The position numbers were made by a program, and so were the translations under genes. The notes beneath the pieces are model-generated. The model was given only the letters and a program-made list of their open reading frames with translations. It made no database searches and was not told where the DNA came from. Positions 4,882 through 44,712 of a stretch of 44,712 nt of DNA are shown here, in pieces. The DNA is taken from positions 1-44,712 of the forward strand of contig VJWM01000351.1 of the NCBI GenBank assembly GCA_010909165.1, read 5' to 3'. Origin of the DNA: Anthoceros angustus (Eukaryota; Plantae; Anthocerotophyta). Each line of letters begins with the position of its first letter. Within the stretch, counting starts at the first letter, position 1.

Positions 4882-5699
4882 ATTTACCCTCTATGTCGTT
4901 ATAGTCCTGGGATTCGATCCCAAGGGAATGGTGTTGTGTCAGGTGTGCTAAATCTATGGATTCTAGACACCGTCGCTCACTACCCCACCTTCTCCCACTG
5001 CCCACCACCATAGTAGACTCGGCCACCGCGGTGGCAGTTCGGCGTGGCGGGCCCGCCTTCTTGCGGAGTCTATTCGTCCGACTTCTCTAACACGGACCTA
5101 GGGCTATCGGACACCTATCGCCTCACCTTACAGAATTTACGATCCTACCACCACTTCCACTCCCCTCACGCGTTTCGATTTTCCCTCACACGCTCTCACA
5201 ATCCCTCCCGGTAGCGCACACAACTACCCCTCAGGAACCTTTCCCTTCCCAATGAACTCTCCCTCGTCTGGGCCACAGACCCCTTTCCCTTGGCCACAGA
5301 CCCTCCTTGGCCACGGACCCCTCTCTCATGGAATGAACACACAGTGGTTGGAAAGAGGATCGGGAAAACCCGGTCGGCTTGGGCGATTCGCCTTCCGGAT
5401 TCCGCCTCGGCCGTCGCGGCACTCCTACCTCTTTTGCCGGCTACCTTCCGTTACGGGCGTGGAGCTTGGCCACTCCGCTCTCGACCATCCGAGATCTTCC
5501 GGCCTTCTTGTGACGAGAAGGCGGTCGCGAACGTTTGATCGACGTCTCCAATCAACCCCACTCGGCGGTTCGATACGGAAGTTCACACAAATCGTCGAGA
5601 GACACCCGGAGGGTCTCTTATACATCGTGGTCCGACTCACTTCTCTTAGTGTCTAAAATTGTAGCTCCTACCACGGCGCCTTACCAATCTAAGCAACAC

Positions 5700-11230: not shown

Positions 11231-11239
11231 TCTGCTCTA

Positions 11240-11730
11240 TGTCTTTCTGAGATGATCATAGGTTGTCCTTGCTTGGCCCCCTGTAACTTTCTTGTCTTTT
11301 CTCCGCATTTAATTCTCTCTGTTTCTGTTCCTCTAGTTTAGACGTACGTATCTGCACACCCTCCTTCATGATCCAATTTCTGAGATGCTTGATCATAGGT
11401 TGCCCTTGCTTGGCCTCCCGTAACTTTCTTGTCTTTCCTCTGCCGTTTACTCCCCCCGTAACTTTCTTGTCTTTCCTTCGCCGTTTACTCTCCCTGTTTC
11501 TTTCTTGTCTTTCCTTCGCCGTTTACTCTCCCTCTCCTTGTTTCTTTCTTATCTTTCCTTCGTCGTTTACTCTCCCTGTTTCTTTCTTGTCCTTCCTTCG
11601 CCGTTTACTCTCCCTCTCCCTGTCTCTTTCTTGCCTTTCCTTCGCCATTTACTCTCCCTGTTTCTATTTCTCTAGTTCAGATGTACGTATATGTACACCC
11701 ACTTCATTCAATTTAGAGTGTGTGTACACC
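11240..11730 (+). repeat. LINE 3' UTR with a segmental duplication and an about 33-35-bp pyrimidine-rich minisatellite (TTTCTTGTCTTTCCTTCGCCGTTTACTCTCCC-like)
   Basis: The ctgagatg...atcataggttg...cttgcttggcc block occurs at about 11246 and 11380. About 6-7 minisatellite units lie at 11420-11660. Confidence 0.85.
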
Positions 11731-11732
11731 CT

Positions 11733-13320
11733 AAACCCACTCAGGCGACCCCCTGGGCAGTGCTCTCTTCGCCATTGCTCACTATAGGGCCCTATCTAGG
11801 GCCGCCTTCTCAACGCGCGACTATGTCTTCTCTTCGCTGGCAAACGACTCTCACATCCTCGGGCCTGGGGACAAAGTCAAGGAGGCCTTTGAGCTCTTCT
11901 CTCATGAGCTTTCTTTGGTGGGCTTGAAGGTCAAATCCAAGTGCGTGTCACGGTCTGGATTCTACCTAATTTGCGGTTTCTGTGGGAGATTACTCGGCTT
12001 TGGGATCATTCTGGGGTCCCTTTGGTTCCCTTGACTTCATCGGGAGCTTCCTGGACCAGGCTCTCGCAGAGGACCTCTCCCATGTCGAGGACCTCCCTTT
12101 GCTGGAGGATACACAGGTGGCCTTTGGAATTCCTTCCTCCTGTTTTGCTAGGCGCCCTGGTTACCTCATCCGTACGCTGCCTCCGTCCCCGACCCTTTTA
12201 TCCCGGCTGCGGCGGTTTGATAGGAAGATTTATGGATACTCTTGGGGACATTCGGGATCGGGGCAGGTGCCCTATGGCGACTGTAGCTGGCGTCCCACCG
12301 CAATTTGGAGGCACAGTCTCTTCTTGGAGCTCTCTTCCCGGGGCTTTTCCTGGCGGTTGGGCCCTCTCACCCTGGCACTCGATTCATCCTCCATAAGAGG
12401 CCCTTTCCGGAGGATCTCGTATTAGGTGTGGAGGAGGGAACCTTCTCTCTCCAAACGTCCTTGAGCCAAGCTAGGGACATGTTATAGGTGGATGCTCGGA
12501 AGGACTTCCTCCTTTCTTGACATTTATTGATGGTTTCGAGGGGTTGAGCATCCTGCTCGGCGGCTCGGCGAGGCTTTCGGTCATCCTCCGGGACCCCTCC
12601 ATCCCAGTCCACAAGAGCGGCTCGCTCTTGTTACAGGAAGGCGTGGGTGCTTGGCTGACGCCCATGCATCCGGGGTTTTCACATCACACCAACCACCTTC
12701 ACTCTGCGATGCGATTGGTCTTGGCTGCTCCGGCTGTGGCTTCGCTCTTACTTGTGAGTGCGGCTCGCCCTCGATGATTACGGGTACACCTTGCTCGTTG
12801 TCCCCACGGGGGTCATCGCATTGCCACTCACGATGCCATCCGCGATGTCATGTTCGCCATCGCTCGCGAAAGCGGCTATATGACCTGGAGGGAGCGGGTG
12901 TATACTCTCCATACAGGTCGTTCAATCAGGGCTGACCTGTACCTTGTCTGCGGCGACCAGGTTTCGGTGGCTGATGTGGTGGTTAGGGCAATGGCTAAGG
13001 ACTTTGACAAATTTGTCAAAGTCCTGTGCCAAAGCTTACCATGCGAGTAGACACGGTGCGGGGTTGTCCCTCTCAATTGCCCTTCAATGGGCGCTCTCAA
13101 CAGCGATCCTCCACAAGGCGGCGACAGTAGGTGACACATCTTCCTCTACCTCCGTGGTTTGCAGGCCGTTTATTCTTCCTGCATATGACATTGTGGGTGT
13201 AGTAGGTGACTTTAGGTAGGGAGCTCAGTTGCTCCTCTTCACCTCGACCCCCTGGTCCCCTTTGGTTGTCCCCTCCTGGATGGGCTTTTCCCATCGTTTT
13301 TCACCTCAATAAAATCCTTC
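11733..13320 (+). mobile_element. 5'-truncated CRE-like (RLE-type) non-LTR retrotransposon
   Basis: RT motifs GDPLGSALFAIAH and SLANDSHILG; CRE-type QVAFGI...CFARRPGYLIRTLPP...FD; CECG...HLARCPHGG...HDAIRD zinc knuckle; RADL...ADVVV RLE motif; LSIALQ...AIL end; AATAAA at 13308. Confidence 0.85.
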
Positions 13321-13404
13321 CTTCATTCAATTTACGGCTGTATGTGTACACCCTCCTTCAACGGCTGTATCTCTAGTTTAGACGTATGTGTACACCCTCC
13401 TTCA

Positions 13405-13761
13405 TTGTGATATAAGTTTTGGCTCATAGTGGTTCTTCTACCCTAGTGGATATAAACAAAGTTATTGTTGTTGTTTATTGTTGTTTTGGCTCATGGTGGT
13501 TTTCTACCCTGTTGGATATAAACAAAGTTATTGTTGTTGTTTATTGTTGTTTTGGCTCATCGTTGGTTCTTCTACCCTAGTGGATATAAACAAAGTTATT
13601 GTTGTTGTTTATTGTTGTTTTGGCTCATCGTTGGTTCTTCTACCCTAGTGGATATAAACAAAGTTATTGTTGTTGTTTATTGTTGTTTTGGCTCATCGTT
13701 GGTTCTTCTACCCTAGTGGATATAAACAAAGTTATTGTTGTTGTTTATTGTTGTTGTTGTT
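13405..13761 (+). repeat. About 5 tandem copies of a 66-68-bp unit ending in a (TTG)n tail; probable LINE 3' terminus
   Basis: GGATATAAACAAAGTTATTGTTGTTG recurs at about 13447, 13513, 13581, 13649 and 13717; the last copy has an extended TTG run. Confidence 0.9.
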
Positions 13762-14406: not shown

Positions 14407-16025
14407 TCAACAACTTACATCTGCTAGTAGCGGTGTTGTCAGATGGCTGGGTGCCTTTTCCAAATCTGAGCTCGGAACATGCACCCTTGAGGAGCTGATT
14501 TTCAGCTCCTGTGCTCTACCCCAGACCACAAAGTACAGGCCCAGCACGATGGCAACTCCTCCAACCAAGCTGCAGCGAAAAATAGACAGAGGCCTTAGAC
14601 TTGCCTGCGACTCAACAAGGATGTTAAACAGAGCACGAAATGGTGACCGACCTTCCCAGGAATAAGGCATTCCCCAGAAAGATCACTGCCAGGGCAGTTG
14701 CAATCAAGCATTGCAGTGGCATGAAAGCTGCTGTCATGATTGTCCCGCCTATCTTTAGACACCACGCTTGAAGGGTATAGTTGAAGCCAGAAGCAATCAC
14801 TCCCTGGAAGGAGATCAGAAACACGTGGTTAGTAGTAACTCGGGTTGCATACATGTGTGATGGTTTGAGTTCAGCACTTACTGTGTAGACAACCCCAATG
14901 ACTGATGCCCCCCAGTGCAGAGCCCAGTCGGATGAATCTGTCTTCCAGGAAATTGCTGTCACTGTGAATTGGAGTGCGGAGAAAAGGTAGGTGAAGCCCA
15001 GAATGGTAAGTGGTGCGGGATACTCTTTCTGAATCGCAGTCTGCAAGAATCGTCTCCGGGTGACTTTAAATAATTTAATATTTTAAATAATTAGCAATGC
15101 ACCACAACCGGCAGCAGCATGATACAGCCTGATTCTTACTCACCTGCATTGCAAGATAAGCAGCCCACAGAAAATTGCTGAAGACAAGGATCACAGCACC
15201 CAATTGCCATTCACTCCAGTTCAAGTTGAACCCCGTTTGGAGTTGGAGCCACTGCCCGACGGGGGTGTGCGCTGCTAGTCTGAGTTCATCAGTGCTTGGC
15301 GTGCCCAGCAGTTGAGGGCCTCGGGTAAAGGTGATTGTCATAGCCCCCAACATGCATAAGGTTGTGCCCAGAATCTTTGCCACTCCATCCCGTCTTTTCA
15401 CGTTGAGCTTCTCCATTCTGTTGCACCAACGTGTCAGGGGCTGTTCCACAAGAGCTAAGGTGCTCTAGCAATGAGGATGCTCACCCCGCGGCAGTGGAAA
15501 CCATGAAAGCGAAAGCAGGAACCGTGTTTTGAAATGCAGCTCCTAGGGCAGCAGATGACATCCCAACTCCTATCAGGAAGGCCGACTGTGCACCGTAGAT
15601 TCTGCAAACGAACCACTGCTTCAGCTGACGAGAAGTCTCCGAGACAAGGAAAATGACAGAAATCCTTGCGCAAACGGGACCCGACAAACTCACCCAACAA
15701 AACCCAAAGCGAAGAACTGCAGCAACAGCCTGAGGGTGAGAGGAGGCCTGATGTTCCTGGTTGACAAGGCAAGCACATACAATCAGCCAGCGTCAAAAAA
15801 AAAAACCTACAGCTCTTCAACAAGAAGAAGAATACCAGACCTTTCAAAGATCAGAGCAGCCGGAAGAAACATGGCAAGCGCAATGGCGCTCCTGTAGAAG
15901 TTGAAGATGAGAAAGCTGAGGCCGGTGTCGAGGGCCAGTCGAGAGAGGATCTGATATCCAGCAAACACGGTCTGCACCACAACCAGAGCCACAGGCAGCC
16001 GGGCCTGCTCCCACCAACCGGCCAT
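14407..16025 (-). CDS. WAT1-related / UMAMIT (EamA, nodulin MtN21 family) transporter, about 370 aa, 7 exons
   Basis: Exons 16025-15841, 15756-15694, 15601-15485, 15417-15144, 15040-14882, 14803-14652 and 14569-14407; all introns GT-AG and phases consistent (1113 nt). Family motifs FER.RPPLT, NTVPAFAF, GVAKILGT.LC..GA, YPAPLT, GVIASG, LYFVVWG. Confidence 0.95.
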
Positions 16026-17752
16026 GACCACAGCAGCACGCACTGGTCACGGAAAAATGGTGCCTTCCCGGATGGCAGCCCCTCTAGCCACTCCCCAGTG
16101 TGCAAACCAAGGCAAGCGCAATGCTGCGGCAGGTGGCAATGCCCTCAGCACAGCATTGCTGCGGCCAGAAGGAGTCTGGTCGAGGATCACTCTCAGCCTC
16201 GCTGGCTGGAGAGGTACACCCAAGGTCAGCTGTCCTTCTCACGCTCATGTTAAGCCAATTCTAGCGTGCGCTCATTGTGCTGAACCTGCAGGCGGAAGCA
16301 GGGCAGAACCAAAAAAGGCGGCTCAGCGCCTGCAGGGCACGCAGATCAAGAACACATTTCTCCTCTCCAAAACACACATACAAGTACAGCAGCGGCAGTC
16401 GGAGAATGTGAAGCAAACAGCCAGAAACTCAAATCCGTTAGAACAGTAAGAACATTCATGACTCGGAGGAGATGAAATCCCAATGCCCACGGACTTGGAA
16501 TTGAAATGACCCACACAATGCACAGGGATTGGAACTGCTCATAACGTTTTCACACATGAGGGATTTCTTGCGGGGCACGGCCGGGATCTGACATGGTGCA
16601 GGGCACACGAAAACTGGCTCCGCATCTACCGGCAAAAGACAAGCAGAAAACTGTATTCAGGAAGCTGCGCTTGCCCTGCAGCTTGCTGCCGAACTTGCTG
16701 GGACTGATCTACTGTGAATATTCGTAACCCACACGAGGCAGCCCTGGCACAATCGTCGAGCACGATTGGAAGCATTTCTCTCTCTCTTTTGGAGAACAAT
16801 GTTTACATACATACTCCTGCAGCTTGTTGGCCAGCGCAAGGCAACGTGGTCGAGACGAAACCGTCCATCAGGCTCAGGCAGGATTTGACTGCAGACTGTG
16901 AAAGCCTCGGCTCTCAAGCGCTGTTGGCGCCATGCCACATGCGGAAGGCGTGTCACATTTGGTGCATATCCTGGGTGGGCCAGCGTCCGGGCACGCTACG
17001 TGTCGGCGTACTTACATGGCCATGCTCATATCTCAGAGGTGCTATCCGAAATGATCTCTGGATTGGGAATGGTGACAACCCATCCGCAGGCTCAAGAATC
17101 GCTGGTGTCTTTGAACATGCTGTTCCTCAAAGGACGGGCAAAGATTTTTCAACTATCCAGACTCCACAGTCCACAGCGATGAAGCTTGTGGGATTGTGAA
17201 GTTTGCAAGCCTCTTCTGCACACGTATTGATGGATGATATTCTGAAGGGATGTCATTGCTACACAGTCTTCACAGGCAGCACAGAGCACAAAGCTCTTGT
17301 GCTCTGTAGTTCCGATATGAGTGGTGAAAGCTGTCCAGATGACCTATCAGTTCAAGGTGGAGGTTAAGATGGTTTTTCAGGGTTGAAGGAAGTTGTTCTT
17401 TTTTGTGTGCATGTAGCATCAGTTGCGGGGTCGTAGGCCACCACAGCTCTGGGCAAAGCGCAGAAGATGCTATGGCAGAAATGGCACATTGTACACGCTC
17501 ACAAGACTTGCAACTACGAATGTACGTCAACAAAATATTGGACTGCCCAAGTTTTTTTACAACGGTATAAACTGCAATCCCTTGCATATACAAAGACCCT
17601 CAGTGGTCCACCCTTATTTCATACAACTGTTTGCTGCCTAGCATGGCAGCCAGACATAAGATTGTACAGTGAAAGAACTGATCGCTGTTAAAACTACTGC
17701 ATATTAACAAGCCATGGTACATCTGCCAGCTTCGAGAATCCTTGCAAACCAT

Positions 17753-24300: not shown

Positions 24301-25513
24301 TACCTCCACGTTCTTGCCCTTAGGGCCAAGGAGTTCCGCGTGGTTGCGTCTCACGATGGCCTCCGGACTTCACGATACGGGTTGTCTTTTAACAAGCCTA
24401 AGGGACACCAAGTGTTGTTGGTCCATCATCAAGTCGGCCACCTTGAAAGGGCGGGTGGTTCTCCTTTGCGTCCGTCGCTTGACCCTTCCTCCGCCTCTGT
24501 GGTGGTCGGACCACTACAGGTCTGTCGGTTCTTCTTGAAGCATCTCGGTCACTTCTCGGACCACATCCGGTGGAAGCTGGGTGTTGCCTTGGGTGAGTCC
24601 TTCTCCGACATTTGGGGGTTTTGGTTTCTTCTTGGCGGGCTGCCGGTTAACTTCGTCCTCTTTGGCGGGTTCGGCTTCCTTGGGTGTTCCGTCCTCCGTA
24701 TCCGTGGGACTATCCCATTTTCTTCCTCTTCTGTCTCCTTTCCTTCGCTCCTTTCGGCGACTCGGGTTGACACTTCCGGTACCTCGGTCCGCCTTCTCTC
24801 CTTAAACTTGCTTCGTACCACCTCGTTCAGCTCCTCGGTGCCTCCTCCCCTCCGCCTCTTTTCTTATCGGCCGCCTTAGGGAGGGCGTGGCGGTGGCTCT
24901 CCCCGGGTGGCGTGGCCGTCCTCGAGGGTTCGGACACAGTCGCCATGTGCCCGCACGCTTCAATCTCCACAGGCGTTCAAAGTCCCGTTGCCTTGCGGTG
25001 GGGTATGGCACGCGTTGGAGTAGTGCCGGGGTTCCCACAGTTCCAGCGACCACCGCCGCCGAGAATTCTGGAGGGGCTCCCATGCGGTCTTTGCGCCAGT
25101 CGATGCAGACGGACCCTGGTACATCGTCTGGGATACAGTCGGTGGCTTCTTGCACTTGGTATGCATCCTCCCTTGTTCCTCGGACTCTTCCCGTAGTCAT
25201 ACTCCACACGGTTCCAGGTGCGGATTGGCCTTGAATGCCCATGTTGGTGACACACCACGGATGAGTCGGACCGTGGTGGCCGCCTTCGCCGTTCTTTATC
25301 CTTCACACGGTTGATCGTCAACTCCTCCACCCTCTTCATTACCGTTCTAGATCTTCCCTCGGCCGCTACTTCCTTCAAAGGCTGGGTCGGGCGGGACCTC
25401 GTGCTGCGGGCATCACTCCTCCCCTCACCTCCGCGACTCTTCTTCTTTATTTTTGAGGTTCTTCTTCTTCCATGACATCCTCAGTTCTTCTTGAGTCCTC
25501 TTCCTCTTCCTCT

Positions 25514-27320
25514 GCCTCGGTCTCATCATCCTCCTCTTAGGGTTCTTCATCTTGAGTCCGACCCCGTTTCTTCTTTTCTTCTTTCCTCCTGGAGGTCCTC
25601 GGTCGTTGGTGCATCGATTCTTCATAGTTCTCCGCCCGGACCGCCTTGCTCACATCTTTCTAGCTGGCGTGCTTAGCCATTGGCTTGGATAAGCCTGCGA
25701 ACCAACGTACCGCTTTGCATGGTAGTGTGGTGGGGTGCGGTCCCGGCGTAGAACGTTCGATGTCGATCCCAACTTCTCTCTTCCTCCCGGGTTCTCGAGT
25801 TTGGACAAGGCGTAGCCTTCTTGATCGATTCGCGGAATCTTTCTGAAGGCATCCTTCAATCTTGAAGGTTGCGGGAGTTAAGGCGTGTACTTTACCGAGC
25901 GTGTCCCCGGGACCCCTTGGAGCAATTTGAATGGTGCGCATCCGAACCTTCTCCGTTGAAGTTTGCGACACGAAATCCTCCACGAAGGTTTCGCGTCTCT
26001 CTCCTTCTTACCTCCAAAGAGAATCGCTTGCTTGGTCGCGTTGTTGCCATCGCGCGATCGGGTGAGGAACCGCCCCTTACCACCGCTGACTTGGTCTTCC
26101 TCCGATGCCTCGGTCTCATCATCCTCCTCTTCAGGGTTCTTCATCTTGATCCGACCCCGTTTCTTCTTTTCTTCTTTCCTCCTGGAGGTCCTCGGTCGTT
26201 GGTGCATCGATTCTTCATAGTTCTCCGCCCGGACCGCCTTGCTCACATCTTTCTAGCTGGCGTGCTTAGCCATTGGCTTGGATAAGCCTGCGAACCAACG
26301 TACCGCTTTGCATGGTAGTGTGGTGGGGTGCGGTCCCGGCGTAGAACGTTCGATGTCGATCCCAACTTCTCTCTTCCTCCCGGGTTCTCGAGTTTGGACA
26401 AGGCGTAGCCTTCTTGATCGATTCGCGGAATCTTTCTGAAGGCATCCTTCAATCTTGAAGGTTGCGGGAGTTAAGGCGTGTACTTTACCGAGCGTGTCCC
26501 CGGGACCCCTTGGAGCAATTTGAATGGTGCGCATCCGAACCTTCTCCGTTGAAGTTTGCGACACGAAATCCTCCACGAAGGTTTCGCGTCTCTCTCCTTC
26601 TTACCTCCAAAGAGAATCGCTTGCTTGGTCGCGTTGTTGCCATCGCGCGATCGGGTGAGGAACCGCCCCTTACCACCGCTGACTTGGTCTTCCTCCGATG
26701 CCTCGGTCTCATCATCCTCCTCTTCAGGGTTCTTCATCTTGATCCGACCCCGTTTCTTCTTTTCTTCTTTCCTCCTGGAGGTCCTCGGCCGTCGTTGGTG
26801 CATCGATTCTTCATAGTTCTCCGCCGCCCGGACCGCCTTGCTCACATCTTCTCTTAGCGCGTTAGCCATTGGCTTGGATAAGCCGAACCAGCGCTTTGCA
26901 TGGTAGTGTGGTGGGGTGCCGGTCCCGCAGCGTGAACGTTCGATGTCTGATCCCAACTTCTCCGTCTTCCTCGCTTGAGGTTCTCGAGTTTGGACAAGGC
27001 GTAGCCTTCTTGATCGATTCCGGAATCTTTCTAGAAGGCATCCTTCAATGCTTGAAGGTTGCGGGGGGAGCGTTAGGGGCGGCGGTATTTCCTCCGGTAC
27101 CAGGCACCCCGTGGACCCCTTGGAGCAATTTGGATGAGTGCGCATCCGAACCTTCTCCGTTGAAGTTTGCGCGACACGAAATCCTCCACGAAGGTTTGAC
27201 GTCTCTCTCCTTCTTACCTCCAAAGAGAATCGCTTGCTTGGTCGGCGTTGTTGCCATCGCGCGATCGGCAGGGTTGAGAACCGCTCCCCTTACCACCGCT
27301 GACTTGGTGCTGCTCCTCTC
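25514..27320 (-). repeat. Three tandem copies of an about 593-bp gag segment (25514-26106, 26107-26699, 26700-about 27320)
   Basis: Identical ORFs offset by 593 bp (25660-25983 vs 26253-26576). Gag-like content KDAFRKIPRIDQEGYALSKLEN...YIERF-like...WFAGLSKPMA. Confidence 0.92.
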
Positions 27321-27470
27321 GATCCGACAACTCCACGCTTGTTGGTGGTGTCCTCGCCTCGAGCTCGTCGTCTCTCACGTGCGCTCGGGCGCTCGGCGAT
27401 CTGGCGTCCGACTCTCTGGTCGTCCTTACCTCCGTCCTCACGCATCCACGCTTGCTACGGGCGATTTCAT

Positions 27471-27484
27471 TCCCGGCAGCGCCA
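27471..27484 (-). promoter_or_regulatory. Primer binding site (tRNA-Asp type), copy 1
   Basis: Minus strand ACA-TTT-TGGCGCTGCCGGGA, similar to the Athila-type PBS TGGCGCCGTTGCCGGGGA. Confidence 0.8.
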
Positions 27485-27487
27485 AAA

Positions 27488-28490
27488 TGTGGCGACTTTC
27501 GAGCGGCGGTAGCGCACAATCCGTGTCGTTGTAGGAAGAGTCCGTTCCCAAAGGAATGAGGCTCCGTTTGCGCGTTTGATTTCTGCGTCGTTCGGTCACG
27601 CGCACATGTTCACTAACTACCGCGTTCACCGCGCGAGCCGGTATGGCCAAGCGTTTGAGACCCGTTCGCGTCCGTTCGTTCGTTCGTCCCTCACACCTCT
27701 TTCTCCACTCTCACTTATCGGTCTTAGGAAGGCGCGGGTTACGTCCGGACCTCCTCGTCGTTCGGGCCTCTCGTCCGCTCTGCCGCCTCCGAGTCCCTCA
27801 CACGTTCGGTCGGGTTGCGGGCCGGCTCCGGACGGGTCCCAGTCACCCTTCCTGCACACACAACACGTTAGGTCCGTCACGGGACCACAGTCAATCTCCG
27901 GGTCGTGCACCTTTCGGTGACTCGGGACTCACGTTAGAAGACACACAAGGTGCGCAGAGCGGCATCAACACCAGAGAAAGATGATTTATTCGGGGCGTGA
28001 CCCTCTTATACTACGCCCTCGTCTTTATTACACCCCTATTACGGTGATGGCTCGGTATACTAATCGACGCCTACCATCCTATTCCCTCCCCTATCTCCTT
28101 CGTCGTGTGGGGGGGAAGGTCCGGGTTCCGCCTTGGGATTGGTGGTCAATCTCCGTCACGGCGGGCGCACCCAATCGGATGATCCGGAGACCCCTCCTCT
28201 CCGGAATCACAGCCGAGGTTGGAGCTCTGGCGGCGGTCGGGCCGCCCGTTACCTAGTCATCCTCCTGGCCTCCCGTGGGTCCCCCTCGGTGGGGCCACCT
28301 ATCCTCCTAGCGTGAAGTCGAGGGCTCCTCCTTCTTGCGAGTCCGGACCTCGAGGTCAGGTCTCGACTCAGTCGAACTCAGTCCGTCTTATTTCACAGTC
28401 CAGGTCGGGTGGGGTCGGCCTCGTCTGGGTTCGGACCTCGGGGTCGAACTTATTACGAGGTCCGGTCCCAAGCTCGGACCGGCTTCAATC
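27488..28490 (-). repeat. Partial LTR copy 1
   Basis: Starts TGTGGCGAC next to the PBS and is colinear with 29975-about 31010. Confidence 0.85.
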
Positions 28491-28499
28491 TGTAATCTT

Positions 28500-29957
28500 G
28501 GCGCAGCCTTAGGGAGGGCGTGGCGGTGGCTCCCTGTTGGGGTGGCGTAGCGCACCGTCCTCGAGCGATTGACACAAAATCGCCATGTGCACGCACCCAA
28601 TCTCCACACAGTTCAAAGTCCCGTTGCCTTCTTAGGAGTGGGGTATGGACAGCGTTGGAGTAGTGCGGTTCCCAGTTCGGACCATAGCCGAGAATTCTGG
28701 AGGGCTCCCATGCGGTCTTTGCGCCAGTCGATGCAGACGGACCGGTGTGGTACATCGTCACAGGATACGCGGTCACGGTGGTGCTTCTTGCACTTGGTAT
28801 GCATCCTCCCACTTTGTTCCTCGGACTCTTCCCGTAGTCATACTCCACAGTTCCACAGGTGCGGAGGCGATTAGCCTTGAATGCCCATGTTGGTGACACA
28901 CCGCACACCACGGATGAGTCCGGACCGTGGTGGCCGCCTTCGCCGTTCTTTATCCTTCACGGTTGATCGTCAACTCCTCCACCCTCTTCATTACCGTTCG
29001 GATCTTCCCTCGGCCCGCTACTTCCTTCAAAGGAGCTGGGTCGAGGACCTCTCGTGCAGTGCGGGCATCATGACCTCCTTCTTCTCCACCCTCCGCGACT
29101 ACGGGCTTTTCTTCTTAATTCTTGGGTTCTTCTTCTTCCATGACATCCTCGGTTCTTCTTGAGTCCTCTTCCTCCTCCTCCGATGCTACCTCGGTCTCAT
29201 CATCCTCCTCTTGAGGTTCTTCATCTTGATCCGACCCGTTCTTCTTTTCTTCTTTCCTCCTGGCGTCCTCGGCCGTCGTTGGTGCATCGATTCTTCATAG
29301 TTCTCCGGACCGCCTTGCTCACATCCTTCTACGCCAGCGACACGTGTAGCCATTGGCTTGGATAAGCCATTGCGGTCACGCTTTGCATGGTAGTGTGAGT
29401 GGGGTCGGTCCCGGCGTGGGCAGATTCGATGTCGATCCCAACTTCTCGTCTTGCCTCGGGTTCTCGAGTTTGGACAAGGCGTAGCCTTCTTGATCAATTC
29501 GCGGAATCTTTCTAGAAGGCATCCTTCAATGCCGAAGGTTGCGGGGGGAGTTACGGTAGTGGTACCTCCGATTGTGAGCCCTGTCCCCGTAGGACCCCTT
29601 GGAGCAATTTGGATGTGCGCATCGAACCTTCTCCGTTGAAGTTGCGACGAAATCCTCCACGAAGGTTTGATCTCTCTCCTTCTTACCTCCAAAGAGAATC
29701 GCTTGAGTCGGCGTTGTTGCCATCGCCGCGATCGGCAAGGGTTGAGAACCGCTCCCTTACCACCGCGACTTGGTCTTTGCTTCCTCCTCACGATCCGACA
29801 ACTCCACCACGCTTACATTGGTGGTGACCTCGCCTCGAGCTCGTCGTCTCTCACGTACTGCGCTCGGCGCTCGGCGATCTGGCGTCCGACTCTCTCGGTA
29901 ATTAGTCCTTAACTACCTCCCGTCCTCACGCATCCCGCAGCTTGCTACGATTTCATT
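28500..29957 (-). repeat. Second copy of the gag 5' region (homologous to 24875-27470 without the extra 593-bp units)
   Basis: Starts gccttagggagggcgtggcggtggctc, as at about 24873, and is colinear up to the PBS. Confidence 0.9.
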
Positions 29958-29971
29958 CCCGAGCGGCGCCA
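29958..29971 (-). promoter_or_regulatory. Primer binding site (tRNA-Asp type), copy 2
   Basis: Minus strand ACA-TTT-TGGCGCCGCTCGGG. Confidence 0.8.
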
Positions 29972-29974
29972 AAA

Positions 29975-31248
29975 TGTGGCGCGACTTTCGTGATAGAGCG
30001 CGCGCACAATCCGTGTCGTTGTAGGAAGAGTCCGTTCCCAAGGAATGAGCTCCGTTTGCGTTTGAGGCGATTCTCGTCTTACTGCGTCGTTCGGTCCCAC
30101 GCACACATTCATCAGTTCACGACTAACTACTGTAGCGTTCATACCCGGTGATGGCCAAGCGTTTAAGGACCGTTCGGCGTCCGTATCGTTCACGTTCGTC
30201 CTCACTCCTGTCCGTTCCTCTCTCACTCACTACACTTATCGGTCTTAGGGAAAGGCGGGTTACAGTCCGGACCTCCTCAAATTGTTGAGCCTCTCCGTCC
30301 AAGACTCTGCCGCCCTCCGAGTCCTCCGGCTCACCACGTTCGGTCCGGTTCGGCGGCTCGGGCCGAGGTCCCAGTCACCCTCCTGCACACCACAACACGT
30401 TAGGTCGTCACGGGACCACAGTCAATCTCTCGGCGTGCACCTTTCGGTGACTCGGGACTCACGTTAGCAAGAAGACACACAAGGTGCGAGCGGCATCAAC
30501 ACCAAGAGAAAGATGATTTATTGACGGCCCTCTTACTCGCCCATGAAATCTCTTTATTACACCTATTACGGTGATGGCATTTCGGTATACTAATCGGACC
30601 TACCATCCTATTCCTCCCCTATCTCCTTCGTCGGCGGTGGGGGGAAGGTCCGGGTTCCGCCTTGGGATTGGTGGTCCAATCTCCGTCACAGCAGTTGCGG
30701 CGCGCAATCGGATGATCCGGTAGACCCCTCTCTCTCCGGAATCACAGCCGGGTTGGGCTCGTGGCGGCGACCGCCCGTTACCACTAACGTCATCCTCCTG
30801 GCCTCCCGTGGGTCCCCCTCGGTGGGGCCGCGCTATCTGCTCCCCTAGCGTAAGTCGAAGGGGCTCCTCCTTCTTCTTGGTCCGGACCTCGAGTCGGTCT
30901 CGACTCGGTCCCAGAACTCAGTCGTCTTATTTCACGAGTCCGGTCGGTGGGTCGGCCTCGTCTGGGGTTCGGACCTCGGTCCGAACTTATTCAGTCCGGT
31001 CCCCAAGCTCCGGACCCCTTGTCATGGACCTCGTCTTGCTAGGTCCTCATCCCTACCAGGCCCTTGTCTTGGGTCGGGTTGGCTCCTCATACTGCGCCCC
31101 GGGCCGTCACCTCCCTTCTCGGCGGGTTGCGGTGAACTTACCACAGGGTCCGTTGCGTCTCGCTCCTCTTGAGGCTCTTCTCCCCATTGCCCGTCTCCAA
31201 GCAGGGCCACTAGAGTCCCGTCTTCCCCATGCCCTTCTTCCCCTCACA
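29975..31248 (-). repeat. 5' LTR (about 1.27 kb); right end inferred from ...CCCCTCACA
   Basis: TGT...ACA termini adjacent to the PBS. The far end is not confirmed by a TSD. Confidence 0.7.
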
Positions 31249-31612: not shown

Positions 31613-34600
31613 CCTACTAGAAATGGCAGCCCATGATCATTGTTGCAATTTTATATTACACTTTCAAATTGCAACAAGCTATGAAACTTGGTATTAAGTT
31701 TGACACTATTCCTTCTCATTTTGTCACCATCTTAACACGAACGACTCTCTTCCTCATCACCTCACCCTCCTAAGTACACCTCTCTCTCACAAGCATTGTT
31801 TATGATTTCAAACATATACTATGCAAACACCTTATATTCTGATCCTTTGTTACAATTTCATGTAACACTTTCCATTTGGAACACTCATTAAGTTAGTTGG
31901 CTTGGTGTTAAGTTTGTGATACTCTTCTCCACCTTCTCTCACCATCTTAACAACATGCAAGTGGTGTGACCTTACACCTCACCATTAAGAGCTTAGCATT
32001 AAGTTTGTTGGCTTGGTGTTAAGTTTGTGATTTTCTTCTTCACCTTCTCTCACCATCTTAACAACACCTTTGGTCTCTCCTTTCACCTCACACTCCTAGT
32101 TAATGCTCGATTATGACACCCATTTTATAATTTTTCCCTCTTTGTGTTGCAACATGTGTTCCCCTCTCACACTATTTTATTCTTCCCTCTTGCTTTTCCT
32201 ACATGATGACAGAACTCTATCTCTCTCCCTGGTTGTCATTCTCTTTCCATTTTGCCTCCTTTGCATAGCTAAGCATTTATAATCTACCTTCCCTCTTCAA
32301 TGCACCCTTGTGTCCACATCTGGTTTTGTTTTAAGCTCCACATACAATTGAAAACTCTTGTTTTACCATTATGTATAGTAGGATTCTAGATTATTTATAT
32401 GTCTATCTATATATATGGTTTGCAGGCCCACTTGTTGTGTATATTCCTATATATATGATTGAAATACGTATTTATGTATGTATATATATGTATTTATACT
32501 TGTATATACTTGTAACCTAAACATAATATTATTTACCTATGTCTAAGTTCGTGGGTGCGAGGCTCACTCTACGTTCGGAGGCAAGGAGGAGGCGGGGGAG
32601 AGGAGGAGGAGGAGAGGAGGAAGGGGAGAGGCAAGGAGGAAGGAGGAGGAGGAGAGGAGGAGGAGAGGAGGCGAGGAGGAAGGAGGAGGAGGGAGGCGAA
32701 AGGAGGGAGGGAGGATTATAAGGAGGAGGTGGAAGATGGAAAGAAGAGGAGCAAGAGGAGGGGAGAAGGAGGAAGAGGAGGGGAGATGGGAAGGAGGAGG
32801 AGGGAGAGGAAGGAGGAGGCCCGTTCCATCTTTGATTTCGATCTCAAATTTTCAGGTGATGCGTAACGTGTGACACACGCGTTGGTGAAGGGATGGTGGC
32901 GGGCGGGATCACGTGTACAGCCAAGCGGATCTTGTACTTGCGAGCATTGCAAGGTCGAGCCAAGACTTGTTCCAATCGTGATTTCCTCTCAAATTTTCAT
33001 TGCGTAACTAGCTAGTGTGATTTGATGTTAGACAAGGCGATAGGCAAGGAGGAAAAGGGGAGAGGATCGAGGTAGAGGAGGAGGAGGAGGAGGAGGAGGA
33101 GGAGGCGAGGAGGAAGGAGGAGGAGGAAGCGAAGGGCGAGGAGGAGATTATAAGGAGGAGGAGGGAAGATGGAAAGAAGAGGAGCAAGAGGAGGGGAGAG
33201 GGGAGGAAGAGGAGGGGAGATGGGAAGGAGGAGGAGGGGAGAGGGAAAGGAAGAGGAGGAGGCCCGTTCCATGTGATTTCCGTCTCAAATTTTCAGGTGA
33301 TCGTAACGTGTGACACGCGTTGGTGAAGGGATGGTGGCGGGCGGGATCACGTGTACCAAGCGGATCTTGTACTTGCAGAGCATTGCAAGGTCGTGCCAAG
33401 ACTGTTCCAATCGTGATTTCCTCTCAAATTTTCAAGTTGTAACTAGCTAGTGTGATTTGATGTTAGACAAGGCGATAGGCAAGGAGGAAAAGGGGAGAGG
33501 GATGGGGTAGAGGAGGAGGAGGAGGAGGAGGAGGAGGAGGAGGAGAGGAGGCGAGAGGAAGGAGGAGGAGGGAGAGGCGGGGAGGGAGATTATAAGGAGG
33601 AGGGAAGATGGAAAGAAGAGGAGCAAGAGGAGGGAGAGGGGAGGAAGAGGAGGGGAGATGGGAAGGAGGAGGAGGGGAGAGGGAAAGGAAGGAGGCCCGT
33701 TCCATGCTGTGATTTCAAGTAAAGACCCGTTCCATGCTGTGATTTCCAGTCTCAAATTTTCGTGATGCGTAACCCTGTGACATGATGTTGGTGAAGGGAT
33801 GGTGGCGGGCGGGATCACGTGTTCAACCAAGCGGATCTTGTACTTGAGCATTGCAAGGTCGCCAAGACTGTTCCAATCGTGATTTCCTCTCAAATTTTCA
33901 ATTGCGTAACTAGCTAGTGTGAATTGATGTTAGACAAGGCGATAGTAGCATGGCGGGGTGTCTCGTGTACATGTACAACTGCAAGTAGTTGCAAGGTCAG
34001 GCCAAGACCCATTCCATGCTGTTATTTCCTATCTCAAATTTTCAGCTCATGCGTAACCAGACTATGATGTGAAGTTAGGGAAGGCGATGGAAGAATGGCG
34101 GGGTCTCATGTACATGTATAGCTGCAAGGTGAGGCCAAGACCCATTCCATGTGATTTCCTACCTCAAAATTTTATTTGATGCGTAACTAGGGTGATGTGA
34201 CATTAGAGAAGGCGATGTAGGCGGTCTTGGGTGAATAGGGGTGACAAGGATGCAGTAGGAGGGACGTTTGGAGGCGGATCCGGTCTTGTAGCACAAAGAA
34301 GGCGAGTGTCTTGTCACCGGCAAGTGAGACATGTGTTGAGTGTGGACGGTGAAAACAACGCAAGGGAGTGGAAGAGGGTGGCGAGGGAGGATAGGAGTGG
34401 AGCAACCAACAGCCATGGTCAAGGCAGGGCAAAAGGCGCGTCGGACATGAGGCGGTTGTCTAGGGAGAGAGAAGGAGGAGGACTTGGAGCCAAACAACCC
34501 CATGCCAAGATAGCAAACATGGGTCCGCGTAGCACAAACTCGTAGGCACAAAAGGCACGAGTGCTCAAGGACAAAAGCGGTAAAGCGTGCGTGGACGTGT

Positions 34601-38718: not shown

Positions 38719-39945
38719 TGTATGGGGATGTGATGGCGAGGCTTCGCCTCCCGAGCTTGGGCCTCCTCGACTAAACCGGCGAAGATAATCCTTCCCCCGC
38801 CTCTCTTCCCTCAGAGCGCATGCAGAATACTAATAGTTATCACCAAGGTGATCCACCTTGGTGAGGTGTTCCAATGGACAATGATCCGGCTACCGCCTTA
38901 CTCGACCGCCAAAGCAGTCGGATATCAACCAGCTGGTGGTCCTCTCTGCCTGTGCCTCAAAGATCGCTGCTGCCGCCCTATCTTCCCCTTCGCCTTGAGG
39001 GGCCCGCACCACACCCCTTCTTCCTCCTTTGGGCGGTAGGTCCCTGACCTCCAAGGTCCATCGCCTGGTCCTCCCGAGGTTCTTGACCGCAACCTCCTTG
39101 TTGACCGCCGCCAACATCTTCCCGGCGAACTCCCGACCAGAGTGACGCCGAACGCCCGCACTGCCGAACACATCCAGTGCCACCTCCACTAATTCTCCCG
39201 CCTCCGCCAGGCCCAAAGTCCGGATAGCGCCGGTCACAATGTTGCGCCCACGAGGTTCCATGGCTCCCAAACTTCCGCAGGCTTTTGGGTGCCATCGCCT
39301 TCGCCTCCTCGCCGTAGCCGACCGAGTTCACCGCACGATGCGCCTCGCCGCTCGCCTCCAACCCCGGCTGAACCACGCCGAAGGTGCTTGGGCGCCAAAG
39401 AGATAGCGCCAGAGAGCCGGGAGCGCAAGAGATCGAATTGTCTCGAGGTCACAGCGACCTTCCTTCGCGCCGGAGTAACTGGGCGGAAGGCGCTCGTCCA
39501 GAATCGCGAGGTCTCGCATGGCTTATTTCGACCTTACGCCCGCTTACTCGCTTTACGCCTGCCTTACGCCGCCACGACTGCCCACGCCGCGGGCGTGAAT
39601 ACCGCTATAACGGCCCTCGGCTACGGCCTGCCACTGCATGCCCGACCTCCACTGTGGCTGGCCCACGGGGCGCCTAGTCCGTCTCACGGCTCAACTTCTA
39701 AGTTATCCGCGATTTATCCCGCTTTGACTGGAGTGGGTCCGGACTTATCCTGCCCCGACGTAGTCCCCGCCATAGTAGGTCCGGCACGTTGCCCACTCGA
39801 GTCCGAGTATACTCCGAGTGCAACCGAGTGCTATCCATGCTTATTCCTCCTTTTCCGCCTTATTTTATCCTCCGCTCCTACGAAAAAAACAAAACCCTAC
39901 TTATTTCTTAATCCCCAAGGGAAGTCCGTAGTCCACATGTTCACA
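38719..39945 (-). mobile_element. Unclassified element end starting TGTGAACATGTGGAC (minus strand), with a leader and a frameshifted ORF
   Basis: Sharp junction with Ty3 coding sequence at 39945/39946. Minus-strand frames LPALWRYLFG...IVTGAIRTLGL...LVEVALDVF...FAGKMLAAVNKEV. Confidence 0.45.
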
Positions 39946-40204
39946 AGGCTGAGGTGTGGGAAGAAACCGAAGAACTAACAAGGGAGGAAATTCCGGACGC
40001 AGAAGAGGCGGATGCTTGCCTGTATGTCAGGAGCACAAGGCAATTGACACAAGCGCTGACACGGGAACATCTCCGGCAGAGAGTGGTTCAGGAGTGTCCC
40101 TTAACGCACGAGTGCCCAGAAAACAGCATACCGAAAACGCTAGTTTTGAATCCGGCCAAGCTGCGGGTCAACAACAAGGTGATTCGGTGGAAGGTGGGAG
40201 GACG

Positions 40205-41050
40205 GGCATTCATCTCATGGAACTTTGCTCGGGATCAGTGGAGCGGTGTTGAGCGGCATTCGGATAAAGAAATACACATGTGTCGAATCGGATGAAAGGC
40301 GTGGTGGGGACTAGAATCATGCGGATGCAAGGAACACGCATTGATTAGTAGAGAAGCGATCAAGGGATGCCAAAGCCGGTTACCTGCAGACATCTTGTTA
40401 GTGGGAAAGCGTCAAATTGATGCCCTTGGATGCAAGGTGGATATGTTGATTGTGTTAGAATGCGAGGAACTTTTCGAGCCGTGGCTCGCAATGGCATGGA
40501 ATTAGCAGTCATCCCGATTCGAGGAAGTGCAAGCGACCAACCCTTCCTGCTGGTACCTACCGAAAACGCGTGTGGTGCATTCGACGCGTGAAGACGTCCG
40601 GAAACAACACGGCAACCCGTAGGACCGGCTGAGAAGAATTCATTGTGTGACGCCGTGCAGCACGGTTCATATGCACATCGGGCGAAGCTTCCGGACCAAT
40701 GTTGGCGGTGACATCCACGAGGCATCACCGCTGATTGCAACGCTATGTAAAGGACATTCGGGTCGGGCTAATGCCACAAGCTGCACGTAAGGGAGATAAA
40801 GTACCCCATTATCCGATTGAACGAGGTGGGAAAGCCAAGAAGGCGTGGCCCACACTCGTAAGACCGGCAATCTATGCGTTTAGGAAAGGGGAGAAGGCAT
40901 GGTCTTACAAAGGAAATGAAGTAGGAGCCAACGAGCAACAGAGGGAACGCGTTAGCCATGGACGGTGATGGCACTTGCACGCTGTGTGTGGAATCGCCCG
41001 ATGCGAGTTGATCGGGCAAGCCACATGACTTGCATGCAATGGTTGATCAA
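40205..41050 (+). pseudogene. C5-cytosine DNA methyltransferase (DNMT3-like) domain inside Ty3 pol, frameshifted
   Basis: Motif I HLMELCSG (ELCSG 40220-40234); KKYTCVESD; RLPADI; motif IV region VDMLIVLECE (EC 40458-40463); motif VI ENA (40562-40570); motif VIII DAVQHGSYAHRAK (40649-40687); AWPTLV (40843-40860); motif X region RCELIGQA (40999-41022). All are in canonical order across frames. Confidence 0.85.
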
Positions 41051-41189
41051 CTGCGGGTTTGGCGTCTGAGATAGCCATGAGCCGTGAGAATGGGGAGCCA
41101 GATCGTGAAAGTGAACTTACCTCCGCCTCGAAGAAACAAGAACGTGCCGCCAACACAGCAGCCTCTGCTACTTTGCCACGAGAAAGGAA

Positions 41190-42520
41190 CTATGAGAATG
41201 CGGTCGATGATTGGCAGATATGTGAAGATTTGCAACCAGCTGAACGACAGAGGATCCGAGACATGTTACTCAGAAATCGTGGTACCTTCGCGTTCAGTTG
41301 GGCCGAACTAGGGCAATATGACCGTATCAAGTTCAAGATCACTACCACCACCAATGAACCCTGTTCAAGAAGACACAAACTAAGTCCCATGGAATGGGAC
41401 ATCAGACAAGCGGTGCAAGGAACTAGCCTAGGCTAATCAAGTCAACATCGCAATATCCGCAGCTCCTTTGCCACTCAAGAAGGATGAACATGGGGAATGG
41501 AAGGATAGGAGAATGTGGGGACTAGAGCTCGAATGAAATAACGCCCATGGAGCGGTATCCCATGCCCACGTTTGATGAGATCTTTGACGCCATTGGTGAA
41601 GCCAAGCACTTCACCACCCTTGACTTTCGATCCGGGTTCAATCAGATAGTGATTGAGGAGGAGGACAAGTGCAAGACAGTTTTGGGGCAAGAGCGCTATG
41701 GGAATGGGAGACCATGCCGTGATTGAAGAATGCATCCATATATTTTCAACGCGGTGACTTGGAATTGCAAGGGTGGCGTCAAGTGTTACATCGATTACAG
41801 TGTTGACAATAACTGGAGGAACACATTGAGCACTTAGAGGTGCTGCAGCGGCCAACTGGATTGAAGGCCCATCCCAAGAATGCAAGTTCGCAGGGGAGAT
41901 TGAATACCTAGGGCACAAGATTGTGCCGGGGCCGCCACAATTGGCCAAAGTACAAGCGATGAGTCTCATGCCCGGACCAAAGGATGTGGCCTTGAGGGCG
42001 TTCACAGGCTTGGTGAACTATTATCCCGGTTTGTAAGGGACATGAGCAGAACTCAAGCCACTATATGAGCTACTCAAAAGGGAAACTCGGTGGCAGGGAG
42101 GAGCAAGAGCAAGCGTGGCAGAGTTGAAAGAGCGGCGAGAGGTAATGCTTAAGAGGCCCAACCGACAGCCCTTCGTCCCATACACGGATTGGAGGTCAGA
42201 GGCATGCCGTGCGCCCGGCAGATGAGGAAGGAAGAGAGCGGGTTGTGGCGTGCGGCAGGTCGAATAACACCGCGAGGCCAAATATTCGCCTTATGAAGGG
42301 GAGTGCCTTGCAGGGGCCTTACACTTAGAGTATACCTATTTGGTCGAAGTTTTCAGTTGGTCACGGATCACCAGCCATTACACTGGCTGATGACCAATAT
42401 GAAGCTAAGCGGGAAGCTTGCCAGGTGGGCTCTCCTGCTATCTGAGTATGATATGCAAATTGTGCACCGCGCTGGAAAAGTACACCTCAACGCCGATGGG
42501 CTCAGCAGGAACCCGATGTG
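41190..42520 (+). pseudogene. Ty3 reverse transcriptase and RNase H
   Basis: KKDEHGEWKDRRM; RYPMPTFDEIFDAIGEAKHFTTLDFRSGFNQI; EYLGHKIV; GLVNYY; YTDW; YEGECLA; FQLVTDHQPLHWLM...LARWALLLSEYD...NADGLSR. Confidence 0.95.
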
Positions 42521-42649
42521 TGGGGCAGAAGATACCATTGGGGCGAGACAAGACTTCGGATCTGTGCAACATTTGCCCAGTGGGTATTTGGCGATGCTAT
42601 CCTTGGAGTCAGGCAGTGATCAACAGCCGTCAGAAGGAGGTCGAGATAT

Positions 42650-43780
42650 ATGGAAGCTCGAGCATGCCATTCAATATGGGATGGGCATGTGTGTGGACAC
42701 AATGTCACTCCGGTAATGACGATTGCTCGCTATACATACAAAGACGGCAAGGTATGTGGTTGATCGAGGGGTGAGGGAGGTGCCACCGTCGGGGAGCGAA
42801 GATCACTAGTGACCAAGATACATAACGTTGGGGCATTTTGGTGCCAAGAGAACACATCACATGTTGAAAAGTACATACTTTTGGTCGTATGCGGATGTAG
42901 AGCAAGTGGTTTGCATGTGATGCGTGAAGGCGAGGTTCAACGTGATGTGGTGCTACATTCACGCCCATCGGGACTATTCTTTCGGTGGTCACTTGATTTG
43001 ATGCCCGAATTGCCGCGACCAAGCAAGGCAACAAGCACGCATGTTGATGATAGAGCACTTTTCAAGTGGGTGGAACTAGCCTTTCTCCCGGTCGAGCTCC
43101 ACGCATACGCCCGCCAGCGTTCAGCAGTTCGCAGAGCGGAAGGCGTGAGGTGTTGGACCAAGGCAATGAGTTCGCGGTGAGTTCCAAGCATTGTCGGATC
43201 GGAGCTTGATACCACCGCCGCACATCTCGGATCATCCTCGTCGACGATTGGCGTAACGGCAAACTTTTAAGGGCGCCGCAAATAATCGCACCGAGGTTGA
43301 GACCGATTGGGATGAGTTGTTGCCATATGTTGCATTAGGATCAGGATCGGTGTGCTTTGGGCAACTTCAGCCCATATTTCATCATGTTTGGGCGGAATCT
43401 TTGTCACATGCCAAACATTGTGGCGTAGACCTATTCTAAACCGAGATTGGGGCAATCCGGAGGAATGTTTCTGAATTACAAAATCGCCCAAGTTGTTTCA
43501 ATGGTAATTCCCATGGCCATGGATAACCCATTGCCATTGCCTTGTCCAACTCGATATGCCTTTACGCCGAGGTGGCTCATGGAAACCCAAGGCGAGGAAA
43601 TTCAAGTAGGGGACTTTGTTATTTACAACACCGACCATCGCACGTTGGATGTAAGCCTTTGGGCGCTTGATTTTGCGGTGGTGAATGTGGGTGAGCAGTG
43701 TCATTGAATTGGAAGGTCGGGACGGACGACGCTGTGGAAGAACACATGCGTCACTTGGCACCATGCCACTTGGAACTTGG
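42650..43780 (+). pseudogene. Ty3 integrase
   Basis: GHFGAKRT...YFW; FRWSLDL; IEHFSKWVEL; SPYFIMFGR; IQVGDFV. Confidence 0.9.
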
Positions 43781-43814
43781 ACACGAGGACTCGCCCATGT
43801 GCATGGAAACCACC

Positions 43815-43920
43815 AATTGACTTGCCTTGCGAACTTTGTGGCCACATTACGGACCCGGAGCTGGGTAGATGCAAGCTTTGGTGTTCCATACAAGTGTGCA
43901 ACGGATGCAACACGGTTTTT
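43815..43920 (+). pseudogene. Truncated PHD-like Cys-rich finger at the pol C-terminus
   Basis: DLPCELCGH...CKLWC...VCNGCNTVF, cut where the PHD His would be expected. Confidence 0.6.
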
Positions 43921-44712
43921 TGTCCACATGTGGACATGTTATTGAAGGAAAAATTTTAAATATTGTAATTTTGATCCGAATGGCTTGAAACTTTTCAGGC
44001 TAAGAGTCACCCAAATGTCAGTGGTACAAAAAAAATTCCAGCGCAAAATAAGTAGGATTAGGCTTTGAACTATATTCACGGGTATTCCCTTTGAAGGTAG
44101 CATACCACTAGATATGGTACAGTGAGTCCACATCAAAAACGGGGAGAGAATATCAAAATTTGAATGTGCGTGTAGATGTTCTCTCTTAATGGAAGAGGGA
44201 GTCTAGTTTTGTCAAAGAGTTTACGGTGGGGAACTCACTTAACATTTAAAATTCAAACCCTCCATACCCTCTTCGCCAAGGAGATGATGGGGCAAACTGC
44301 TTCTCTCCCGCCGATCCTCGGAAGGCTGCCGGCTCACGACACTTGTCACAGATCCTAAGTGGTTTGCTTGGCAAACAACTCAAGAGATGGCTCCAACGCG
44401 CAACAACGGCCGATGCCGACGTCACGACGGGCGAACCTCTCAAGGTCTTCGTATGACCACCTAGATACCCGAACGGCATATTCGAGGATCTGCAACCACT
44501 GCCCGCACGGCCTCAGGATTTCGCCAGAGCTTGGTCTCTAAGCCTACCGGACGGCGATATGAAGAGATTGTCTATGCACTCCACCTCCCGCCCGAGCGAT
44601 ACGAGTGGGCCCGCTTCTTCATCGAAGTCCTCGAGAGGAAGCAGGGCAGGGCAGGAATGAAGTGCCTGCAGGAACTCCTCGGAGAACTCTCGTTCACCGA
44701 GGCATGCGCTGA
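43921..44712 (+). mobile_element. Start of an unclassified element beginning TGTCCACATGTGGAC, with an AT-rich leader and a degenerate ORF running off the window
   Basis: Abrupt compositional switch after 43921; frame ...LVTDPKWFAWQ...YEEIVYALHLPPERYEWARFFIEVLERK... Confidence 0.45.

Follow-up and report, generated by a model that had tools for sequence, protein, structure and literature searches.

Does the sequence just upstream of a decayed reverse transcriptase (RT) in a hornwort contig derive from a DNA methyltransferase (DNMT), and did that methyltransferase belong to the retrotransposon itself? A retrotransposon that encodes a DNA methyltransferase of its own reverses the usual view of methylation as a host defence. 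The question is raised by contig VJWM01000351.1 of Anthoceros angustus (GCA_010909165.1, forward strand), whose whole stretch of 44,712 nt was analysed and is called the window here. The original prediction placed a DNMT3-like C5 cytosine methyltransferase at 40205-41050, directly 5' of a Ty3/Gypsy RT, RNase H (RH) and integrase (INT), from motif strings interrupted by small frameshifts.

Detection of the methyltransferase relic

Translation of the + strand from 39900 to 41500 in three frames recovered all of the predicted motif strings, which are spread over the three frames. Stop-free reading frames over the claimed segment do not exceed 77 residues. Pfam found no methylase in ten stop-free pieces of 39912-41433, in which the gathering score of PF00145 was not reached, and phmmer with three window pieces against the PDB returned chance matches only. 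An ESM Atlas feature search with the motif IV piece gave a best score of 0.78. Since the single pieces match no methylase in Pfam or the PDB, the motif reading can be neither accepted nor rejected from the pieces alone.

Relatives were identified with the 129-residue stop-free piece at 41047-41433, covering the N-terminal part of RT, as a query against 1.84 billion representative proteins. Twelve weak matches were obtained, including P0009, a protein of 1343 aa with zf-CCHC, Asp protease, PF00145 (35.5 bits) and RVT_1 in that order. In two shorter matches, P0005 and P0004, the end of a DNMT domain lies just upstream of the matched stretch. A search with the DNMT region of P0009 returned 39 proteins, most of which combine PF00145 with RT, RNase H and integrase. 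Intact relatives pass the PF00145 cutoff of 22 bits (P0009, 35.5; P0036, 39.2; P0037, 26.7).

A family profile was built from 37 retrotransposon-borne DNMT domains. When all six translated frames of the window were searched with it, stops being replaced by X, it gave three matches only, colinear and all on the + strand (Table 1), and the next best match elsewhere in the six frames scored -5.2 bits. DNMT domains were also aligned to 40150-41060 with a custom local protein-to-DNA aligner that tolerates frameshifts, using 60 shuffles per protein as the null (mean 35-38, sd 4-5; 35 +/- 4.4 for P0037). Four retrotransposon DNMT domains scored far above this null (Table 1), while the reverse complement of the segment scored 32-46, which is the null level. 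The motif strings of the original prediction are therefore real. A methylase is recognized by the family profile and by frameshift-aware alignment and is missed by PF00145 on single pieces; the predicted extent is retained, with its end corrected from 41050 to 41041.

Table 1 Positions of the features described in the window and of the matches that define them
Feature	Position	Strand	Evidence or remark
Direct repeat pair	24870-26098 vs 28503-29777		83%
Direct repeat pair	25505-26696 vs 26095-27316		93%
Direct repeat pair	26688-28480 vs 29173-31016		82%
Approximate 5' truncation zone	39880..40150	.	GC drop from 60% to 52% near 40.0 kb; no gag/protease upstream
Decayed DNMT3-like C5 cytosine methyltransferase domain	40205..41041	+	three frames; family HMM, frameshift-aware alignments, shuffles
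DNMT as mapped from P0037	40219-41039	+	frameshift-aware alignment
Motif I, SAM-binding, ELCSG	40220..40234	+	aligns to DLFAG/ELFAG of relatives
Motif II-like YTCVESD	40273-40293	+	alignment to relatives; not in the original prediction
Motif IV VDMLIVLECE	40437..40466	+	alignment to relatives
Motif VI PFLLVPTENA, ENV-type	40541..40570	+	P0009-guided alignment; ENA at 40562-40570
Motif VIII DAVQHGSYAHRAK	40649..40687	+	family DAxxxGSYAHR; DNMT3A AAHRAR
Family-specific block AWPTLVRPAIYAFR, target-recognition region	40843..40884	+	HMM and alignment; not in the original prediction
Motif IX (EPTS...LAM.G)	about 40925-40966	+	P0009- and P0036-guided alignments; not in the original prediction
Motif X RCELIGQA	LIGQA within 40999-41025	+	P0009- and P0036-guided alignments
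DLHAM after motif X	41027-41041	+	alignment; not in the original prediction
Family HMM match	40338-40451	+	profile 63-99
Family HMM match	40640-40687	+	profile 174-189
Family HMM match	40699-40920	+	profile 200-275; i-E 7.8e-8, best
P0037 DNMT alignment	40150-41060		score 158; z 27.8 over shuffles
P0036 DNMT alignment	40150-41060		score 93; z 13.6 over shuffles
P0032 DNMT alignment	40150-41060		score 103; z 13.2 over shuffles
P0009 DNMT alignment	40150-41060		score 80; z 9.5 over shuffles
Linker and N-terminal RT, 129-aa stop-free piece	41047..41433	+	protein search, match to P0009
RVT_1, frameshifted	41498..41920	+	Pfam on piece, E 2.4e-4; mapping from P0037
RT_RNaseH	42160..42447	+	Pfam, E 5.6e-11; mapping from P0037
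Integrase zinc-binding domain, frameshifted	42786-42926	+	mapping from P0037
Integrase catalytic core rve, frameshifted	42980-43176	+	mapping from P0037
Integrase C-terminal region ending in Cys-rich PHD-like relic	43354..43947	+	alignment score 123, whole stretch

The relic is 33-38% identical to the DNMT domain of P0037, and its colinear alignment to relatives presents motifs I, IV, VI, VIII, IX and X in canonical, non-permuted order. Broken frames are read through with X at every break. In the frameshift-aware alignment, GIRIKKYTCVESD of the window pairs with GIRIRRYIYVDAD of a relative, LPADILLVG...KVDMLIVLECE with WPHDVTLIG...PVDMVIAGWECQ, and PFLLVPTENA with PEVAVVIENV. Further along, DAVQHGSYAHR pairs with DAVSFGSYAHR, AWPTLVRPAIYAFR with ALPTLMATPQSYAFR, and RCELIGQA.DLHAM with RCRILGQAQDLNSM.

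The element and its decay

The RVT_1 and RT_RNaseH matches in Pfam on + strand pieces indicate a decayed Ty3/Gypsy pol. When the whole of the closest relative, P0037 (1217 aa), is aligned to 39900-44712, the score is 1084 over 963 aligned residues at 45% identity. Along the window the order is DNMT, linker, RT, RNase H and integrase, with 38% identity in DNMT and 53-58% in the three pol domains. The alignment bears out the claim of a DNMT3-like domain directly 5' of RT-RH-INT, and the same layout is found in P0009 and in the environmental contig L003. The stretch at 43354-43947 aligns to the ORF after pol in the contig of P0037, which encodes the C-terminal end of the integrase together with a PHD finger (PF00628, E 7.4e-10). 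Within it, the PHD-like relic at 43815-43947 is not significant by itself (z 1-2) and is colinear with the PHD finger that closes the integrase ORF of L001 (the contig of P0037), L003 and L004.

Between 34000 and 40230, tblastn and frameshift-aware alignment for gag and protease gave results at or below the shuffled mean. Together with the jump in GC composition, this indicates that the copy is 5'-truncated just ahead of the DNMT. A position of the methyltransferase between protease and RT, as originally proposed, accordingly holds for the relatives and not for the window copy, which has neither protease nor gag. The 3' end of the element was not found before the window ends at 44712, nor was a matching repeat pair, and no LTR, primer-binding site (PBS), gag or protease is demonstrable for the window copy.

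Depending on the frameshift penalty, the best alignment of the pol region contains 17-38 frameshifts and 5-10 in-frame stops, of which 5-11 frameshifts and 2-4 stops fall in the DNMT segment. When the alignment is guided by P0037, the window keeps 8 of 18 family-invariant and 13 of 23 nearly invariant residues; these counts are lower bounds, because the alignment path took another frame at ENV and ended before motif IX. The observed/expected ratio of CpG is 0.85-1.03, with no clear depletion signal of past methylation. Judged by its reading frames, the window copy is dead and encodes nothing now. With high confidence, we assign 40205-43947 to a dead, 5'-truncated Ty3/Gypsy copy of a family in which a DNMT3-type DNMT separates protease from RT and the integrase has a C-terminal PHD finger.

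Other features of the window

A multi-exon EamA/UMAMIT-like transporter gene lies at 14410-16046 on the - strand, with a weak EamA match in its first exon (E 0.003). A separate reverse transcriptase fragment at 9881-10246 on the + strand (RVT_1, E 4.5e-13) is unrelated to the DNMT element. Long direct repeats, GC-rich and C/T-skewed, occupy 24870-31016 (Table 1), and this block is probably nested or tandem LTR-like sequence. It is followed at 32500-34250 by a purine-rich satellite of the GGA/GAG type, whose units measure about 435-468 bp and whose strong GC skew reaches +0.55.

Alternative explanations

The motif strings might be a chance collection from the three frames of spacer sequence or of a gag/protease region in decay, as could be argued from the stop-free pieces, none of which yields a methylase from Pfam or the PDB, and from the uninformative ESM Atlas result. 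This reading is refuted by the family-HMM matches, which are colinear and confined to the DNMT segment in six frames of 44.7 kb, by alignment scores 9-28 sd above shuffles with the reverse complement at the null, and by long family-specific blocks held in common, such as AWPTLV..YAFR and GSYAHR; we leave it practically no probability. A genuine relic could instead descend from the DNMT3 gene of the host, as a pseudogene that happens to adjoin an unrelated Gypsy fragment. The copy is without gag and protease, so the junction upstream of its DNMT is unlike that of an intact element. However, the relic runs unbroken into the linker and RT, as after the DNMT in P0009, P0005 and P0004, and lies on the same strand as RT with similar decay and no intron-like gaps. 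It also has signatures of the retrotransposon family that are absent from DNMT3A, namely the GWECQ-type motif IV and ALPTL..SYAFR. A host pseudogene is very unlikely on these grounds, and the methyltransferase relic is best read as part of the element.

A further reading concerns the state of the copy. Many of its frameshifts might be assembly indels, in which case the true sequence could be close to intact; the excess of indels over stops at the lenient penalty (38 versus 5) is in keeping with this. Strict penalties, however, still leave 8 frameshifts and 10 stops in RT-INT alone, and homopolymers show no excess of frameshifts nearby (8 of the 38 sites, where 6.8 would be expected). The neighbouring EamA/UMAMIT-like gene retains long unbroken exon-sized frames, a sign that indel errors are not numerous in that part of the assembly. 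In the window copy, moreover, family-invariant residues are substituted and gag-PR is missing altogether. We consider a nearly intact copy improbable and retain the interpretation of a dead one.

Relatives and their architecture

Three of the 39 DNMT-bearing relatives come from Closterium sp. NIES-53/54; Closterium is a zygnematophycean charophyte. All domains are in one ORF in P0009, P0017 and P0018-22. Two ORFs are used in L003, a 17.8-kb environmental contig with two element copies that are 99.2% identical: ORF1 (1283 aa) encodes a zinc knuckle, protease and DNMT, and ORF2 (1074 aa) encodes RT, RNase H, integrase and PHD. This division into two ORFs recurs in L004 (GCA_017884025.1). The L003 contig is flagged as circular, and the two full elements stand head-to-tail in 1-13586 with an offset of about 8.1-8.3 kb; either a true tandem or a wrap-around in the assembly could account for them.

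A tree of the RT-RH region groups the window with P0037, L003 and L004 (SH-aLRT 88) on the side of the elements with DNMT before RT, and the window RT-RH is 51% identical to that of L003. This tree contains DNMT-bearing elements only and says nothing on the number of DNMT captures. In the DNMT-domain tree, the window has a branch length of 1.86 and takes no supported position. A second lineage, P0041-P0055 (e.g., L005 1188-7223), makes up the opposite side of the RT-RH tree (SH-aLRT 99), and in its member P0041 the DNMT is C-terminal to RT-RNaseH. The label DNMT-after-RT given to P0049 in the tree is probably wrong, as its DNMT occupies residues 1-342. P0053 (MGB8816241.1), a Gypsy polyprotein of 1974 aa with RT, RNaseH, integrase and PHD, is filed under a Minisyncoccia bacterium MAG. 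Its DNMT domain was found by alignment, with no PF00145 on record, and the entry probably stems from a eukaryotic contig that was wrongly binned with a bacterial genome.

DNMT3 character and the Glu-Cys motif

All 29 sequence matches of the P0037 DNMT in the PDB at E <= 0.01 are DNMT3A/3B/3C (best 5.8e-10). An AlphaFold2 model on a 31-sequence family alignment had a mean pLDDT of 94 and a pTM of 0.92. In a Foldseek search with this model, the best 50 by E-value of at least 500 matches were all DNMT3A/B/C (E 1.5e-19, TM 0.70/0.80). As far as can be told from the closest intact relative, the DNMT of the family is DNMT3-like by sequence and by predicted fold. DRM methyltransferases have a rearranged motif order; the order in the family is canonical, unlike that of DRM.

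A Pro-Cys dipeptide in motif IV is near-universal among C5 methyltransferases. The catalytic Pro-Cys is absent from the window, where the Cys is kept (codon 40461-40463) and preceded by Glu, as in the GWECQ of relatives. The original prediction had noted the retained Cys in this Glu-Cys context and left it open whether the context was real, decay or sequence error. In a census of motif IV in 37 relatives, 17 are of the GWECQ type and the rest, P0036 and P0026 among them, of the GWPCQ type. The GWECQ carriers are scattered over several clades (P0009, P0018-22, P0032, P0037, P0039-41, P0049, P0051 and P0053-55). Residues invariant across the 37 are the Cys and Gln of motif IV, the Glu of ENV and AH.R of motif VIII; the SAM-binding motif is conserved in the relatives as well. 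L001 and L003, the two closest intact relatives, are from different samples and both of the Glu-Cys type. Their DNMT domains, compared over 321 codons, show 30 synonymous and 13 non-synonymous differences (dN/dS 0.14).

Decay or sequencing error is ruled out as the source of the Glu-Cys context by its occurrence in 17 of 37 relatives and by the purifying selection. On comparative sequence evidence, the Glu-Cys motif IV is a lineage trait, under purifying selection in the closest relatives. The frequency of GWECQ and the dN/dS value together indicate that the window inherited its Glu-Cys from a functional, selected variant.

Proposed mechanism and significance

We propose a mechanism that would apply to the live ancestor and not to the dead window copy. 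The DNMT would have been made within gag-PR-DNMT and then freed by the protease of the element. The freed enzyme may have travelled with the particle or the pre-integration complex, where it would methylate the element's own cDNA or the DNA near the integration site. The PHD finger on the integrase would read the state of the histone H3 tail and thereby bias integration. The chromodomains of chromoviruses, which bias integration, provide an analogue for a PHD finger on the integrase.

In the literature searched, Gypsy-DNMT3 was reported from Klebsormidium nitens only, and it was later cited as 'streptophytes (Gypsy-DNMT3)'. The search covered few subscription journals, and within these bounds it found no report of a land-plant Gypsy-DNMT3 and no mention of a PHD finger or a Glu-Cys motif in Gypsy-DNMT3. 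The kind is therefore already known, and what is apparently new is the land-plant host, here with a dead copy. Taken together with the intact relatives from Closterium and from many environmental assemblies, this land-plant relic suggests a wider and older family than the published record shows. We see even chances that Gypsy-DNMT3 is an old streptophyte family that is also present in Zygnematophyceae and in at least one land-plant lineage (hornworts), with a selected Glu-Cys writer and a PHD reader. If this is true, a land-plant genome was once home to retrotransposons that could write 5mC on their own.

What makes the locus interesting is mainly that its host is apparently a land plant, that the family is broadly represented in public assemblies and that the Glu-Cys variant is under selection. 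The window copy is a fossil, valuable as a marker of past activity and not as a working gene. The natural Pro-Cys and Glu-Cys variants of the catalytic loop can be used for testing enzyme activity.

Comparison with known systems

The DNMT-Gypsy polyproteins of Closterium sp. NIES-53/54 and of environmental assemblies (P0032, P0039, P0040; P0037/L001, L003, L004) have the same family motifs as the window, and their order is gag-PR-DNMT followed by RT-RH-INT-PHD. Their ORFs are intact, whereas the window copy is broken. The window DNMT is only 33-38% identical to theirs. None of these elements belongs to the genome of the window, and at the DNA level the similarity is about 72% over two short RT/RNaseH stretches only. 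The second lineage, P0041-P0055, has a related DNMT domain and a Ty3/Gypsy RT-RH-INT, often with PHD. Its domain order differs, with the DNMT of P0041 after RT-RNaseH, while the window element belongs to the DNMT-before-RT type.

The mammalian DNMT3A/3B/3C and the family DNMT have the same motif order and share the AHRxR of motif VIII, at about 21% identity. Unlike the mammalian enzymes, the family DNMT has no PWWP or ADD domain. Motif IV is GWECQ or GWPCQ in the family and GGSPCN in the mammalian enzymes. A longer insert also sets the family DNMT apart, and this insert contains an ALPTL..SYAFR block peculiar to the family.

Klebsormidium is a charophyte alga, and its element KnitGypsy-Dnmt3 is the published counterpart of the window family. 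In Klebsormidium nitens, KnitGypsy-Dnmt3 carries an intronless DNMT3-type domain inside the Gypsy Pol ORF with Ka/Ks < 0.2 (de Mendoza et al. 2018, PMC5890265). The isolated domain produced no detectable methylation in yeast, a result that its authors called inconclusive, and the text of that paper makes no mention of a PHD finger or a Glu-Cys motif IV (PMC5890265). The hosts differ, being a charophyte for KnitGypsy-Dnmt3 and apparently an embryophyte for the window element, of which the copy at hand is dead and truncated. Both are of the Ty3/Gypsy type with an unrearranged DNMT3-type domain in the polyprotein, and both are intronless and multi-copy, KnitGypsy-Dnmt3 by its published description (PMC5890265). 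Purifying selection on the DNMT is likewise found on both sides, with Ka/Ks < 0.2 in KnitGypsy-Dnmt3 and 0.14 in the closest relatives of the window element.
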